A stretch of DNA of 64,000 nt from Blastocladiella emersonii ATCC 22665 (GCA_025594325.1 JANHCV010000002.1:496001-560000), one strand, 5' to 3'; shown: positions 44,748 through 51,189, counted from the first letter of the stretch. Notes: generated from the sequence alone by a model not told the origin. Program-made: numbers and translations.

Positions 44748-47351
44748 TCACCGCGGCCCCTCAGCGGCCGACGCGGACCCGAGCATGCGGTCGAGCGACT
44801 CGACCGACATCATGTGTGCGTCGCCGTCGCCCATATCTGAGACGCGCGACCGCAGCGTGCTGGACGTCGAATTCGTCGCGCCGTAGAGCGCCGACGCGAT
44901 GCGGTCGGCCGTCGACGCCGCGTTCCCGCCGCCCCACCCGGGCACGGGCGCCAGGACACGCTCGAGCGTGCGCTCCAGCGTGCGGCGGTCGATATCCATG
45001 CCCGTACCAGGGAACGCGACTTCGTCGGCGCCCTCGAACAGGTGCGTGCGCATCAGCCGCTCGAGGCTCGTGAGCCCCGTCGACGACCGGCTCAAAGTGC
45101 TGATCGCGGACGTGAGGCGGTCGAGCGACATGGCGTCCGAGTCACCCCCGCCGCTGCCGGCGCCCGCACCGGTGCTCTCGGGCTCGGTCAGGTGCGCGTT
45201 CTGCGGCTGCTGGTGCGGGAACCCGCCCGCGCCCGAGTTGTTGCTGCCAGACTCGACGAGCGACGTCACCTCGCGCAGGAACCGGTCGAGCGAGTCGGCG
45301 TTGAACATGCCGCTCGCCGGGATCACGCCCGGCACCGTGTCGGCGAGCGTCAGCTGGAAGTCGTCGTCGCCGCCATCGGCGGGTGCGGGCGCCGGCGGTG
45401 CCGCGGCGGCCTCGGCGAGCGCGAGCCGCTCGAGCGTGCGCGAGATCTCCATCTCCTCGCCCTCCGCCTCCCCCTCCTCGGCGCCCTGCCCACCCTGCTG
45501 CGCCGTCTGCTGCGCGTGCTGCTGCTGCTGATGGGGCGGCGAAAAGTACTGCGGCGACATCGACGCCGCTGCCGCGGCCGCCGCCGCACTGTCGAAGGTG
45601 AACTGGTCGGCGGGCGCGCCCGAGAACGAGGCCGTGAACTCGTCGATCTGGTGGCTGAGCTCGGTCGGGTGGTGCCCGAAGTCGAGGTTGGCGGCGGCCT
45701 GGGCGCCGTCCGACAGGAACAGCACGGGGTCGGCGAGCGGCTGGAAGTCGGGGACGCCCTGCTGCTGCGTCTGCTGCGGAGGCTGCGGCGGGAGCGGGAG
45801 CGGTGCCGGCTGGAACGGCTGCTGCTGCTGCGGGTGTGCGAGGTGATGGTGGTGGTGGTGCGTGTAGTCCATGGCGTTGACGGCGAGCTGGCGGTGCGAG
45901 TGCACCTGCGCCTGCGCCGTGGTGGTGCCGGGGAACTGGATCGGCGGCAGGCTCGAGCTGAGCGCCGGCAGGTTGGCTGTGAGCGGGGGCAGGCTCGCGT
46001 TGAGCGGCGGCAGGTTGGCGGCGAGCGGTGGGAGCTGCTGGTACTGCATCTGTGGCTGCTGCTGCGGCACCTGGCGCGGCGGCGCGTAGCTGCCCGCCGT
46101 GGTCGCGCGGCGCGACAGCTGCGCCTGCGCCTGCTGCTGTGCGCGGGCCTGCGGGATGGGCAGCGGGAGCCCGTAGCCCTGACCCACAGGCTGCTGCTGC
46201 TGCTGCTGGAGCGGGATCTGCATCGGCAGGTGCGGCGCCTGGAGGTTGGGCGAGTAGCCCGCGTGCGTGTGGACGTGGTTGGCGTGCGGCGACCCGCTGC
46301 CGACGACGGCAGGAGCAGCGGGCTGGAACTGGATCGGGTTGGACTGCGAGATGTACGACGACGCGGTAGCGGGCGATGGCGCCGGGTGCTGGAGCGGCGA
46401 CGCCGAGGCGGCGTAGTTGAGCGAGGCGGACCGCTGCAGCATGGCGGCGGGCGGCGGGGCCATGGTCGGCAGCATGGCGGTCGGGTCGTACATGCCCGCG
46501 TGCGCGTGGTGGGAGTTCGGGTGTGTGTGCGGGCCGTCGCCGAGCGTCACGGTGAAGACCTCGGCGTCCGGGTCGTTTTCATCGCCGTACTCGTACTCGT
46601 AGTCGTACTGCTGGTCGTACTGCTGGTCGTACTGCTGCTGCTGCTGCTGCTGGTGGTGGTGGTTGTACTGTTGCGGGTGGTGGTCGTAGTACTCGCCGGC
46701 GTGGCCGACGTGCACGGGCGCGTAGACAGGCGCTCCACCGCCGCCGCTCGGCGAGCCGTAGTGCATGGCGGCAGCAGCAGCGGCAATGGCGGCGGCCGAC
46801 TGCTGGCCGGGGGTGCCCGGCAGGCTCGACGGGGTCGACTGCGGCGACGCGGTCGCCTTGCTCGCCTTGCTCTTGGCCGCGGCGGCCTTGGGCTTGGCGG
46901 CCACCGGCTTCGCGGGGCTAGCCGCGGCGCCGCCGTCGTCGACATCCTGGAGGTCGCCCTCGAGGAGCAGCAGCCACGACTTTGTCCCATACACGCGCTC
47001 GAGCTTGGCGTCGAGCTCGGGGTCGCCCGCGTTGGCGCGCACGTAGTCGGAGCAGGCGACGTGGGTCTTGATGTGGCGGCGGACCTGGTCCTTGCGGTTG
47101 GTGGCCTGCGTGCACCCGGGCCGCGGGCACGCGAACGGCCGCACGCCGAGGTGCCGCGTCTGGATGTGCCGGTCGCGGTCGTGCCGCCGCTGGAACGCCT
47201 TGGGCGGGTCGCACTGCGTGCACTGGTACCGGTTGCGCTCGTCAAAGTCGGCGGCGGCGGCCGCGACGGCGGAGGAGTCGCTGGCTGTCTCGGCGGGATG
47301 TGAGTGAGTGGCGCTCGGATGGGATGGCGGCGACGACGTACACGACAGCAT
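44748..47351 (-). CDS. C2H2 zinc-finger transcription factor with Gln/Pro-rich regions
   Basis: Two fingers (YQCTQCDPPKAFQRRHDRDRHIQTRH and FACPRPGCTQATNRKDQVRRHIKTH) and polyQ tracts. Confidence 0.85.
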   Translation of the reverse strand: MLSCTSSPPSHPSATHSHPAETASDSSAVAAAAADFDERNRYQCTQCDPPKAFQRRHDRDRHIQTRHLGVRPFACPRPGCTQATNRKDQVRRHIKTHVACSDYVRANAGDPELDAKLERVYGTKSWLLLLEGDLQDVDDGGAAASPAKPVAAKPKAAAAKSKASKATASPQSTPSSLPGTPGQQSAAAIAAAAAAMHYGSPSGGGGAPVYAPVHVGHAGEYYDHHPQQYNHHHQQQQQQQYDQQYDQQYDYEYEYGDENDPDAEVFTVTLGDGPHTHPNSHHAHAGMYDPTAMLPTMAPPPAAMLQRSASLNYAASASPLQHPAPSPATASSYISQSNPIQFQPAAPAVVGSGSPHANHVHTHAGYSPNLQAPHLPMQIPLQQQQQQPVGQGYGLPLPIPQARAQQQAQAQLSRRATTAGSYAPPRQVPQQQPQMQYQQLPPLAANLPPLNASLPPLTANLPALSSSLPPIQFPGTTTAQAQVHSHRQLAVNAMDYTHHHHHHLAHPQQQQPFQPAPLPLPPQPPQQTQQQGVPDFQPLADPVLFLSDGAQAAANLDFGHHPTELSHQIDEFTASFSGAPADQFTFDSAAAAAAAASMSPQYFSPPHQQQQHAQQTAQQGGQGAEEGEAEGEEMEISRTLERLALAEAAAAPPAPAPADGGDDDFQLTLADTVPGVIPASGMFNADSLDRFLREVTSLVESGSNNSGAGGFPHQQPQNAHLTEPESTGAGAGSGGGDSDAMSLDRLTSAISTLSRSSTGLTSLERLMRTHLFEGADEVAFPGTGMDIDRRTLERTLERVLAPVPGWGGGNAASTADRIASALYGATNSTSSTLRSRVSDMGDGDAHMMSVESLDRMLGSASAAEGPR

Positions 47352-47793
47352 CGTGGTTTCACTTGGATTCAGGACGCGCTCCGGCGGCAGCAGTTCATGG
47401 AGGGGAGGCTGTGCAGCGTCCCGGTACTGACCAGTGATGAGTGCGTGATATGGGAGGGGAGAGCGGCGAAGGCGCGCGGCCGGCTGGCAGGATCGAGGGC
47501 ACAGCCGGCCGAGCGCCTCGCCGCGCCCCGCGCACACCCGAGCCGAGGCCGAGGTTCCAAGTTTAGACGCCCCGCGGAAAGCCCCGCGACCTCGTCATGG
47601 ACCTGCGCTTCTCCTCCGACCTTCATCATCGCGGCGATGGAATATTTGATGAAGCTGAGCGGGTGAGTCGAAGGCGCGGTGGCGGTGGGTGGAAGGCGAG
47701 CGCGGCGTGGGACTCCTTTCGTCGGCCACCGCGCTCCCTTCTCTCGCTTCTTCGACCGCCGACCTTTCGACGACGACGAATCACACACACGCC

Positions 47794-49062
47794 ATGCAGC
47801 ACGACCACGAGACCAAGAAGTACGCGCGCGGCGTCGTCATCGGCAAGCTGTACCCAGTGCACGCGGGGCACGTCGCGCTGATCCGCCGCGCGGTCTCGCA
47901 GTGCGCCGTCCTGGACCTGATCCTGTGCGAGCGGCGCGGTGAGCACCCGTCGGGCGCGGTGCGCGAGTCGTGGCTGCGCGAGCTGCTCGCCGCGGACCTG
48001 GCCGCGGGCCGCGTGCGCCTGCTCCGCGTCGAGGACACGTACGACCAGGACGACAGCAAGCTGTGGGCGTCGCTGACCCTGAACTGGATCGCGCCGGGCC
48101 CGCCGCACCTCGCCGCCGTCTTCACGTCCGAGGCGTACGGCGACCCGTACGCCAAGTGGTTGACCGAGCTGTCGGGCCACCAAGTCGTCCACGAGTGCGT
48201 CGACCGGCCGCGCACTGTGGTCCCTGTCTCGGGCACGCTCGTCCGCACCAAGCCGATGCACCCGCGCATCTGGCCGCGCTGGCAATGGGCCGCCGGGCAC
48301 CCCGCCATCGTGACGGCAGCGGGCGACGTGCCGGACCTCCTCCCGCTCCCGACGCGCGCGTGGTACATCCTGCGCGTAGTCCTGTGCGGCGCCGAGTCGT
48401 GCGGGAAATCGACGCTCGCGCAGCGGCTGGCGGCGCACTACGCGACGGCGTGGATCGGCGAGGTGGGCCGCGACGTGACGGTCGACAAGCTGCGTGCCGC
48501 GGGGTCCGAGCCCGTAGCCCTCGCCGCCGAGGAGACGGCGCTGACGGCCGACTGGCACTCGTCCGATTTCGTCCGCATCGCGCGGATGCAGACGGCCGCC
48601 GAGGACACGGCCGCGCGCGAGGCCGCCGCGCAGGGCGTCCCGCTCGTCGTGTGCGACACGGACGCGCTCGCGACGCTCATCTGGCACGAGCGGTACATGG
48701 TCCTTGACCCCGCGGCCACCCCCGCCGCGCCCGAACCGACCGGCGAGCCGGTGCCCGCCCCCGCGCCGATCCAGCCGTACGTCGCGGCGCTCGAGGCGCA
48801 CGTCCGCGACCTCCCCGCGCACCGCCACCGCGCGCTGTACCTCGTGCCCGACCCAACCAAGGTGCCGTTTGTCCAGGACGGGACGCGCGACGGCGAGCAC
48901 CTGCGCGACTGGATGCACGCGCGGTTCGTCGCCGAGCTCGCGGCCCGCGGCGAGGCGTGTGCGGTCCTCGACGCTGACGGGTACGACGGCCGGTTCGAGC
49001 AGGCGGTCGCGGCGATCGATGCTGAGGTGGCGCGGCTTCGTGGCGGCGAGGGTGCGGAATAG
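47794..49062 (+). CDS. nadR: NadR-type bifunctional NMN adenylyltransferase / ribosylnicotinamide kinase without HTH domain (intronless)
   Basis: HxGH motif in GKLYPVHAGH, FTSE, VSGT, P-loop GAESCGKSTLA, Walker-B region VVCDTD, PFVQDGTRDGE. Confidence 0.85.
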   Translation: MQHDHETKKYARGVVIGKLYPVHAGHVALIRRAVSQCAVLDLILCERRGEHPSGAVRESWLRELLAADLAAGRVRLLRVEDTYDQDDSKLWASLTLNWIAPGPPHLAAVFTSEAYGDPYAKWLTELSGHQVVHECVDRPRTVVPVSGTLVRTKPMHPRIWPRWQWAAGHPAIVTAAGDVPDLLPLPTRAWYILRVVLCGAESCGKSTLAQRLAAHYATAWIGEVGRDVTVDKLRAAGSEPVALAAEETALTADWHSSDFVRIARMQTAAEDTAAREAAAQGVPLVVCDTDALATLIWHERYMVLDPAATPAAPEPTGEPVPAPAPIQPYVAALEAHVRDLPAHRHRALYLVPDPTKVPFVQDGTRDGEHLRDWMHARFVAELAARGEACAVLDADGYDGRFEQAVAAIDAEVARLRGGEGAE

Positions 49063-49271
49063 AAGGGAGAAGGAGGTCACGCGTGGGTTCATTTTTGCGA
49101 GCACAGCGAGGTGAGAGGTGGGTGCGCGACGCGTTTTGGGCGGCGGCGCCACTCGTCGGTCGCGCGGCGCGTGCGCGTCTGGCACTTGGCTCGCCCCAGC
49201 GCCCCCCCTTGTCCCTCTCCCTCTCCTCTCCCTCTCGTCCGCTGCAACGCTGAGCCGTGATCCGCGCGATC

Positions 49272-50514
49272 ATGCCCGTCGTAGTCCCTGCAACGCAATC
49301 CAACAGCACCACCACCATGGCATCAACAACCCCGCCCCCCACCGGCGCCGCCGCTCCCGCATCCGTCGACTTTGGCCCGTTCACGGCACACTTTGCGACG
49401 CAGCGCGCGCAGGGCAACCGGCCCGAGCAGCAGGACGAGACTTTGATCCTGGCCCCGCTGGACCTGGCCCCCGTCTTGCCCGGCCGCCCCAAGACGCTGG
49501 CGCGCGTGACCCCGCTCGCCCTGTTCGCCGTCATGGACGGCCACGGGAGCGACGGCGGGAAGGCCTCGCGCAGCGTGCGCGACGCGCTCGCCCGCGAGGC
49601 GCCCGTCCACTTTGCCGCCGCCGTCGCGGAACACGTCCCCGAGGACGGCGACGCCGAGGATGTGGCGGCGGTCGAGCGCGCGATCCGCCAGGCGCTCGCG
49701 GCGACCGTCCTCGCGGTGCATGGGGATCTCACGACGGACGCCGGCGTCGACTGCTACCTGTCGGGCACCACGCTCGTCCTCGCCGCGCTCACGGCACGGT
49801 CCGTGCATGTCGCCAACCTCGGCGATTCCCGCGCGGTGCTTGGGCGTGTGCGGCCGGACGGGTCGGTCGAGGCCAAGCCCTTGTCCAAGTCCGTTTTCTC
49901 GGGAGCGGTTCGGTGACGGGGCGAAGCTGACTCGAACGCGACGGCGACGACGACGACGTGTAGCGACCACACCTGCTCGAACAAGGAGGAGCTCGACCGC
50001 GTGTTGAAAAAGGGCGCCCGCGTCGAGCGGTCTGCGACCGAGGGCGCCGGCGACGGTACTCGCACCCCCTTGCACTCCCGCGGAACCGGCACTAACCCAC
50101 CGCGCGCACGCGCGTGTAGACGGCCCGCTGCGCCTGTTCAAGGGCTCGATGCCGTACCCGGGCCTGGTCGTGACGCGCGCGCTCGGCGACACGGCGTCCA
50201 CGGCGATCGGCGTGCTGTCGACGCCCGAGCTGACGGACCACGCGCTCGATGTCTCGGGTGGCGGCGGCGACACGATGCTGATCCTGGCCTCGGACGGCGT
50301 GTGGGACGGGCTGCCCGGGCCGACCGAGGCCATTGGCGTCGTCCAGCGCGTGCTCGCCAAGGCGCCCGCGAACGGCGGTGTCTCAGGCCGCGTCGCCGAG
50401 GTGGCGTCCAAGAAGCTCATCAAGGCCGCGCTCGCGGGACTCGACAAGCGGCAGATCGACGATAACGTGTCGAATGTGTGCGTGCTGCTCACCAAGAACG
50501 AGGGCGCCCAGTAG
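49272..50514 (+). CDS. PP2C/PPM-family protein phosphatase; two introns
   Basis: EQQD, AVMDGHG, SGTT, ANLGDSRAV, DH, VTRALGD, LASDGVWD, DN. Confidence 0.93.
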
Positions 50515-51189
50515 TGCGTCTGTGGGAGGAGACTGGAACGGGGAAGAGAGTAGTAGTAGTAGTGATTGCGGAAATCCAACGCCAAACATTTTTCTTGCCT
50601 TCTCCGCTGTCTCGCACGGCGCACGTGGCGCGACGCGACGCGACTCCCGGGTGCGAGACACGCTCGAACATGACACAGGATGCGTCACGCTGATCCGCGG
50701 CCGACGGATCGCCCCCCGCAAGGTTTCTCGCTCGTTCATCCGGCGGGGCGGCGCGCGCCGCGCCACCATCGCCGACGACTGGCCGCCGCCGTCAACACGA
50801 CAAGGTTCGCGCGCCGGCGTGAAAGGCAGGCGGGGAGAGGAGCAGGGAGAGGAGAGAATTCGGTCGCTCCTCGAGGCGTGGCGGCCGCCGCCGACGCGTT
50901 CCCACTCCTGGTCGGTCCTGGGCATGGTCAGCTTCGCGCGCACCGCTCCCTCTCTCTCTCTTGCTGCACTCAACGACTCTCCCTCCTTCTGCCACGTAGC
51001 ACTTGCTTGTGTTGTGTGTGATTGACTAGAGACACTCGCAGACTCGCTGCCGCCGCCCTACTCGCGCAACCTTCGCGCTCCCCCAACTCCATCCATCGCA
51101 TACGATACCCCGCGACTCTGCACCGTGCGCATCTCCATCTCGCTGCTGCTGTGCCAAGACGCGCGTGTGCTCACGCCACGCCCCGGTAG

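Follow-up and report, generated by a model that had tools for sequence, protein, structure and literature searches.

An HTH-less NadR-type enzyme gene of Blastocladiella emersonii, its probable, unlinked PnuC partner and their fused relatives in fungi, other eukaryotes and giant viruses

NadR-type enzymes, in which a nicotinamide mononucleotide (NMN) adenylyltransferase is joined to a P-loop ribosylnicotinamide kinase, make up a family that, judging from the sequences retrieved here, is overwhelmingly prokaryotic. An open reading frame (ORF) of this type in the nuclear genome of the blastoclad fungus Blastocladiella emersonii ATCC 22665 raises the question of what it encodes, how it came to be there and with which partner it would act. 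The ORF occupies positions 47794 to 49062 of the 64,000-nucleotide stretch analysed here, hereafter the window (GCA_025594325.1, JANHCV010000002.1:496001-560000), which had received an initial annotation made from the sequence alone. It proved to be a conserved gene of the blastoclads, accompanied in the same genome by a gene for a predicted PnuC-type transporter of nicotinamide riboside (NR), and we consider it rather probable that it represents the enzyme half of a split PnuC-NadR module, which was acquired once in the blastoclad line and is likely of bacterial-operon origin.

On the plus strand the open frame extends from 47689 to 49062 without internal stops; its first ATG is at 47794 and the in-frame extension upstream of this codon holds no ATG. 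The gene and the parts of its predicted product, with the evidence for each, are the following, where helix-turn-helix is abbreviated to HTH and the model confidence is the predicted local distance difference test (pLDDT):

47794-49062, plus strand: NadR-like gene, a complete intronless ORF of 422 amino acids (aa) plus stop, of the HTH-less bifunctional type (ORF, family, PDB and model evidence)
47821-48261, plus strand: predicted NMN adenylyltransferase (NMNAT) domain, residues about 10-156 (TIGR01526; Rossmann-type strand/helix pattern in the model; Foldseek)
47842-47871, plus strand: first nucleotidyltransferase motif GKLYPVHAGH (HxGH), residues 17-26, aligned to GKFYPLHTGH of 8x7f
48226-48246, plus strand: second transferase motif VSGTLVR (ISxTxxR type), residues 145-151, aligned to ISATMIR of 9x6f; conserved
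48274-48333, plus strand: insertion 1, within the interdomain linker, residues 161-180; pLDDT 53-57, no secondary structure
48340-49041, plus strand: predicted ribosylnicotinamide kinase (RNK) domain (P-loop, AAA_28), residues about 183-416 (AAA_28; PRK08099; model; Foldseek)
48388-48414, plus strand: Walker A GAESCGKST, residues 199-207, lysine retained
48652-48666, plus strand: Walker B-like CDTDA, residues 287-291 (alignment)
48706-48783, plus strand: insertion 2, Ala/Pro-rich, residues 305-330; pLDDT 54-68
48868-48894, plus strand: FVQDGTRDG, Arg-containing lid-type kinase motif, residues 359-367, aligned to WVDDGLR of 9x6f

Family models, solved structures and the predicted fold agree on the nature of this protein. 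The NCBIfam model TIGR01526 (nadR_NMN_Atrans) matches residues 12-156 (E 8e-30), the full-length NCBIfam model PRK08099 (NadR) matches with E 4e-20, Pfam AAA_28 covers residues 194-393 (E 1e-23), and the ORF aligns without an intron across 96-100% of the lengths of its homologues. All PDB sequence matches are NadR-type chains (9x6f, 8x7f, 1lw7); the best of them, 9x6f (E 2e-13), is a 357-aa chain named nicotinamide-nucleotide adenylyltransferase, which may be the enzyme of the phage-borne NARP3 system discussed below. The AlphaFold model, built on a 39-sequence alignment, reached a pLDDT of 88.8 and a predicted template modelling score (pTM) of 0.88, with low confidence only at residues 161-180 and about 303-330. 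In Foldseek searches ranks 1-8 were NadR structures, all aligned over both domains, with 8x7f, 1lw7 and 6gyf (Lactococcus lactis, with bound NR) on top at template modelling (TM) scores by target of 0.68-0.72, and the transferase domain resembled NadR and archaeal NMNAT structures.

All catalytic motifs of both domains are intact and invariant in the six blastoclad proteins (6/6); GKLYPVHAGH is kept in blastoclads, fusions and bacteria alike, and FVQDGTRDG is nearly invariant over our alignments A1, A2 and A4. As 12 residues precede the first transferase strand, the HTH repressor domain of enterobacterial NadR is not present. Both insertions are Ala/Pro-rich, lineage-specific and predicted to be disordered: insertion 1 is missing in 16/16 bacterial and 17/17 fused relatives of alignment A4, and insertion 2 is missing in the bacteria and fusions of that alignment and shorter in the remaining blastoclads. 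By its sequence, motifs and modelled fold the window protein is an HTH-less NadR-type enzyme, in which an NMN adenylyltransferase is followed by a P-loop kinase for ribosylnicotinamide, and because of this homology, the intact motifs and the fold, its predicted chemistry is most likely NR to NMN to NAD+. On this point the initial annotation, which had described a NadR-type fusion with intact motifs in both domains, no HTH, no introns and two Ala/Pro-rich insertions, was correct throughout.

The gene is not confined to this genome. A word-index search with the window protein returned as best matches five blastoclad proteins, from Catenaria anguillulae (51% identity), Blastocladiella britannica (48%) and three Allomyces species (46%), followed by bacterial and metagenomic NadR-like proteins at 34-40%; the N-terminal domain alone gave no matches in the word-index search, and a feature search with residues 1-175 returned bacterial and phage clusters only. 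A profile of the six blastoclad proteins was run against 1.84 billion representative proteins, of which 4170 matched at E <= 0.001; the relatives described here are the best 150 of these 4170, and most of them are unnamed metagenomic proteins. Blastoclad proteins scored 629-733 bits and the next matches about 310 bits. Among the matches listed, those that bear an organism name outside the fungal and EukProt records were all bacterial, and besides the blastoclads only two named fungal genera were found in searches that covered 1.8 and 5.8 billion proteins, so that the family is represented in three phyla of fungi, Blastocladiomycota, Chytridiomycota (Nowakowskiella) and Ascomycota (Geoglossum). 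Public records label the fungal proteins only as "AAA domain-containing", "ATPase/kinase" or "hypothetical". Certain bacterial or metagenomic NadR-like proteins among the nearest bacterial relatives (P0007 and P0046; Streptomyces is among them) have lost the Walker A lysine, with GTT for GKT/GKS, which suggests that the kinase has become inactive in those bacterial lineages.

In each of the three orthologue contigs that were read (Catenaria, B. britannica and A. macrogynus) the gene is a single exon, and synteny with the window was found in none of them. The Catenaria and A. macrogynus orthologues lie amid clearly eukaryotic genes (DHHC, ELMO, LSM, Utp14, MBOAT), and that of B. britannica lies near genes of more general families, namely cyclophilin, ThrE and a weak match to complex I B14.5a. 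Because the six blastoclad proteins form one clade (support 100/100), the NadR-like gene is a trait of the blastoclad lineage and not an event in this genome. The proposal of a horizontal-transfer candidate in B. emersonii holds as far as the bacterial type of the gene is concerned; its acquisition would predate the divergence of the sampled blastoclads.

In Haemophilus and Lactococcus, NR is imported by PnuC and trapped through phosphorylation by NadR. A candidate for the first of these two parts is found on the same 2.8-Mb contig (C11) as the NadR-like gene:

G000:C11:2454506-2455087 (L017:1252-2175), plus strand: PnuC-type NR transporter gene, intronless, 308 aa from the first ATG (Pfam and PDB matches)

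This gene matches Pfam NMN_transporter (PF04973, E 8e-27) and the solved PnuC structure 4qtn (E 2e-15); Pfam gave no matches among its neighbours. Its product and the PnuC halves of the eukaryote and virus fusions described below have in common an N-terminal extension, about 80 residues long, and are 42-50% identical over about 240-300 residues. The bacterial PnuCs compared, from 5 loci obtained by scanning the genomes of 185,579 prokaryotic species for motifs, a scan that reaches only PnuCs sharing two exact motifs, are 26-32% identical over the core only, and the one beside the nearest named bacterial NadR, of a Pyrinomonadaceae metagenome-assembled genome (MAG), is 28% identical over 87 residues. 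In this MAG (L041:3652-5975) a small AAA_18/AAA_28-like gene, pnuC and nadR stand in tandem on one strand, with pnuC 9 bases upstream of nadR, which is the order of the common fusion (PnuC first, NadR second). By sequence, the B. emersonii PnuC is clearly of the fused eukaryote/virus type, and it is this half that ties the blastoclad pair to the fused family.

That family emerged from the profile search, where many of the next-best matches were proteins of 560-890 aa that combine PnuC (NMN_transporter), NMNAT and AAA_28 according to Pfam. Named fusions came from Nowakowskiella (two isolates), Geoglossum simile, G. umbratile and two EukProt records, and fusions in the reverse order (NadR then PnuC) are present too. 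Representative loci, together with related kinase genes, are:

L018:3886-5829: Nowakowskiella sp. JEL0407 fusion PnuC+NMNAT+RNK, 647 aa, single exon, annotated as hypothetical protein
L019:607-2511: Geoglossum simile fusion PnuC+NMNAT+RNK, 634 aa, single exon, annotated as hypothetical protein
L021 (L025:8001-9674): reverse fusion on a 168-kb contig (IMG/VR UViG 3300027898_000006) that also carries Pox_VLTF3
L020:8001-10010: PnuC-NadR fusion; the 83-kb contig also has genes for HNH/NUMOD endonuclease, dCTP deaminase, two tyrosinases, RING and F-box proteins
L026:7989-8552 and L027:960-1505: stand-alone AAA_28 kinase genes, 181-187 aa, without a transferase domain, on giant-virus MAG contigs

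The Nowakowskiella and Geoglossum fusion genes are intronless, as is the window gene, and one of them neighbours a ribosomal L3 gene and the other a fungal G protein-coupled receptor gene. From its gene content the 83-kb contig looks like one of giant-virus origin, a third fusion belongs to a contig that is clearly eukaryotic and bears a split SAC3/GANP gene, and on two further contigs (L023 and L040) Pfam gave no matches among the neighbours. Of the two stand-alone AAA_28 genes, one has a HAD hydrolase gene two genes off and the other adjoins a Smr-domain gene. The bdelloid rotifers Rotaria sordida and R. socialis (P0292 and P0293) have PnuC alone, of the eukaryote/virus type and 37-38% identical to the B. 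emersonii PnuC. The fused proteins of Geoglossum, Nowakowskiella, EukProt and giant viruses are nearest to both B. emersonii proteins (40-42% for the NadR-like protein), and they would represent a sparse clade of eukaryotes and giant viruses whose two halves usually form a single polypeptide. That zoosporic fungi can host giant viruses is now known from a report in which PnuC and NadR genes are not mentioned (PMC13533422).

Phylogenetic analysis of the NadR part was carried out at two levels. In a FastTree of 286 NadR modules the blastoclads (support 100) fell within a supported 76-row group containing 29 of the 30 fusions. A more careful IQ-TREE analysis (LG+C20 PMSF, 55 rows, unrooted) recovered the blastoclads with 100/100 support, with Allomyces splitting from Catenaria and the two Blastocladiella, and placed Geoglossum-type PnuC-NadR fusions as their sister (95/89). 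The named bacteria form one clade (93/79), the fungal clade and these bacteria lie on the same side of a 92/90 branch, and the chytrid proteins stand apart from the other fungi. For the NadR half the tree thus favours, without proof, a fungal sister over a direct bacterial one. Phylogeny, suggested as a check in the initial annotation, gives Geoglossum fusions and not bacteria as the nearest relatives in the tree.

As to the metabolic setting, the canonical fungal salvage of NR employs Nrt1, Nrk1 and Nma1/Nma2/Pof1, where yeast Pof1 is an additional adenylyltransferase (PMC7072712), so that the earlier statement that fungi use separate Nrk1 and Nma1/2 was too narrow. An Nma-type NMNAT is present in this genome, on the contig that holds the window and about 140 kb upstream of it:

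G000:C11:357844-358413 (L006:802-2184), plus strand: canonical Nma-type NMNAT gene with a long low-complexity N-terminus

Because this canonical NMNAT is retained, the NadR-like enzyme would be an added route and not a replacement. A genome search with Pfam AAA_18 and PRK yielded a protein with a strong AAA_18 match, a two-domain AAA_18 ORF, genes resembling uridine kinase and a PRK-like ORF; as far as these were examined, none could be assigned to Nrk1. The genome has a second AAA_28 gene without a transferase domain and unrelated to the window gene (G000:C17:2007394-2007888, L010:1348-2010, minus strand; E 2.5e-12), which is adjoined on the same strand by a 195-aa ORF that may belong to it. 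This second gene might encode a Ttd14-like protein.

The NadR-like gene is truly integrated, old and fully ameliorated in its host genome. Its GC content at third codon positions (GC3) is 0.94, its relative synonymous codon usage (RSCU) correlates with that of a pool of five host ORFs at r 0.97, and the GC content of each blastoclad NadR-like gene follows that of its host. In the window it lies between two eukaryotic genes:

44748-47537, minus strand: C2H2 zinc-finger ORF, 929 aa counted from a GTG, containing extensive low-complexity tracts rich in Gln, Ala and His
downstream of the NadR-like gene: PP2C gene

The C2H2 ORF diverges from the NadR-like gene across a gap of about 260 bases. The two Pfam-matching pieces of the PP2C gene, searched separately, lie in different frames and the gene therefore has at least one intron, where the initial annotation had counted two; that annotation was right about the eukaryotic, intron-bearing surroundings and the host-like GC-rich codons. 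One contig of a public DNA run (X1) spans 46674-50800 with zero differences, at a depth of 138x compared with 122-148x for the other contigs of the run. The DNA runs all derive from one sample that is possibly the source of the assembly, so this linkage to both flanks is not independent support.

Bacterial contamination or misassembly, against which the initial annotation had already argued, has nothing in its favour beyond the mostly bacterial affinities of the family. It conflicts with the host-like GC3 and RSCU values, with the C2H2 and intron-bearing PP2C genes on either side within a 2.8-Mb contig, with the crossing of both junctions at genome-wide depth and with the clearly eukaryotic surroundings of the orthologues in two further blastoclad assemblies. 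We give this explanation practically no credence, and the contig across the junctions together with the host-like codon use effectively rules it out. Nearly as little can be said for a protein that has kept the fold while serving as a sensor or regulator that binds NAD, NMN or NR, or as an enzyme with a single activity. The loss of the Walker A lysine in some close bacterial relatives indicates that the family tolerates loss of the kinase, a canonical NMNAT is available in the genome, and the two large insertions could be interaction sites; every catalytic motif is nevertheless intact and invariant among the blastoclads, and a matching transporter has been retained, which makes such a role very improbable.

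The history that we favour starts from a window ORF whose product would be a functional NadR-type enzyme of the cytosol that lacks the DNA-binding head. In this enzyme the C-terminal P-loop kinase would convert NR to NMN, the N-terminal HxGH adenylyltransferase would use NMN and ATP to form NAD+, and the PnuC facilitator would admit NR, which phosphorylation by the NadR-like enzyme would trap. The module probably entered the blastoclad line once, before the split of Allomyces, Catenaria and Blastocladiella, followed by vertical descent and amelioration. Its ultimate source would probably be a bacterial pnuC-nadR operon, and its immediate donor may have been a bacterium, another eukaryote or a giant virus. 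Fusion could be a simple means by which a eukaryote or its virus keeps the two parts together, and the two-gene state of the blastoclads might have arisen by fission of a fusion or by separate capture. Since a prokaryotic family shows a patchy eukaryotic spread and occurs on giant-virus contigs, horizontal spread is favoured. The old, ameliorated transfer of the initial annotation is upheld in its age, integration and amelioration; direct passage from a bacterium to the blastoclads is not the best-supported route. Likewise, a one-enzyme route from NR to NAD fits the motifs and the fold, to which the PnuC partner, missed at first, has to be added.

Several observations weigh against the split-module history. 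The window protein reaches 104 bits against the curated equivalog cut-off of 341 for TIGR01526, and 72 bits against the curated cut-off of 201 for PRK08099, and on this sequence evidence is a divergent NadR member outside equivalog definitions built on bacteria; Pfam CTP_transf_like (PF01467) gives no match to it, which also sets it apart from the canonical eukaryotic NMNATs (Nma1/2, NMNAT1-3). The PnuC and NadR-like genes are about 1.9 Mb apart on contig C11, neither adjacent nor fused, and as they are unlinked here their coupling is read from their relatives; the blastoclad PnuC was examined in the B. emersonii genome alone. With a canonical NMNAT at hand, the NadR-like gene may be dispensable, and among public run records no RNA run was found for the organism. 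Finally, the deep branches of the unrooted tree are weak, a tree that groups the blastoclads with the bacterial clade nearest to them is not rejected by the approximately unbiased (AU) test (delta lnL 8.3, p 0.295), and the NadR half is 39-40% identical to bacterial (acidobacterial and planctomycete) proteins, about as much as to the fusions.

These last values, along with the overwhelmingly bacterial membership of the family and the 92/90 branch that leaves the fungal clade together with the named bacteria, are what would be expected if the blastoclad ancestor had long ago received a nadR gene or pnuC-nadR operon directly from a bacterium, independently of the fusions. Such a transfer is nonetheless unlikely in our view, given that the best tree pairs the blastoclads with Geoglossum-type fusions and that the PnuC resembles the fusion halves, down to the common N-terminal extension, far more than the bacterial PnuCs compared (at most 32%). 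We rate somewhat lower still a purely vertical inheritance from an early fungal or older eukaryotic ancestor, with loss in nearly all other fungi and no transfer into the blastoclads. Members in three fungal phyla, the sister relation of blastoclad and Geoglossum-type proteins and the fully host-like composition of all the genes are compatible with it, but the distribution is extremely patchy, with two other named fungal genera among the matches listed, the chytrid proteins stand apart from other fungi in the tree, relatives occur on giant-virus contigs, and introns are absent from all fungal copies examined. Going beyond the split module itself, one might speculate that giant viruses spread the bacterial-origin module among zoosporic and other fungi, that the fusions are a one-chain counterpart of NARP3 which restores or raises NAD+ during infection, and that the blastoclad pair is a domesticated copy split after capture; we put this forward as a tentative idea that is more likely wrong than right.

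The type of enzyme is already known. A conserved NadR-like gene in blastoclads, a split PnuC/NadR pair in a eukaryote and a fused PnuC-NadR clade in fungi, other eukaryotes and giant viruses each appear to be undescribed in the searchable literature, in which nothing was found on PnuC-NadR fusion proteins; the main text of a paper on horizontal gene transfer in 44 early-diverging fungi names neither NadR nor these genera. If the proposed history is true, fungi would have a third, bacterial-style way of using NR, in which PnuC and one two-step enzyme stand beside Nrt1/Nrk1/Nma, and the fused versions would constitute a natural gene-fusion argument for transporter and enzyme acting as one unit. 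The giant-virus copies would link the biology of eukaryotic viruses to that of phages carrying the same pair to restore NAD+ during infection, and the locus would stand as a well-documented example of old gene acquisition across domains, in a fungal lineage that diverged early.

Compared with known systems, the predicted pair would follow the same path from NR over NMN to NAD+ as the canonical fungal salvage, whose proteins are separate and unrelated or distantly related to it; Pof1 may be related to the NadR transferase domain. Bacterial NadR (Haemophilus influenzae 1lw7; L. lactis 6gyf and 6gzo; the trifunctional 8x7f) has the same two-domain fold and motifs and the same expected chemistry together with PnuC, which for the window protein is a prediction. 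The window protein differs from it in being about 20-23% identical to the bacterial structures, in lacking the HTH repressor domain of enterobacterial NadR, in exceeding the length of its nearest bacterial relatives by about 95 residues (through the two disordered and several smaller insertions) and in being encoded in a eukaryotic nuclear genome. The fusions carry in one chain, in either order, what the blastoclads have as two unlinked genes. In the phage system NARP3, finally, a PnuC-like transporter and an HTH-less NadR-like enzyme, in Escherichia phage Bas30 the proteins Bas30_87 and Bas30_86, import NR and make NAD+ in two steps (PMC13464706). Its genes are adjacent and counter NAD-depleting bacterial defences, whereas those described here belong to a cellular eukaryote, lie 1.9 Mb from each other and are not known to stand in a defence context; their products are about 20-25% identical to the NARP3 proteins. 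Yet the pair is the same, an NR transporter of the PnuC type with an NMNAT+RNK enzyme that has no HTH, and as NARP3 is borne by phages, so the fused PnuC-NadR is borne by viruses, on the giant-virus contigs of eukaryotes.

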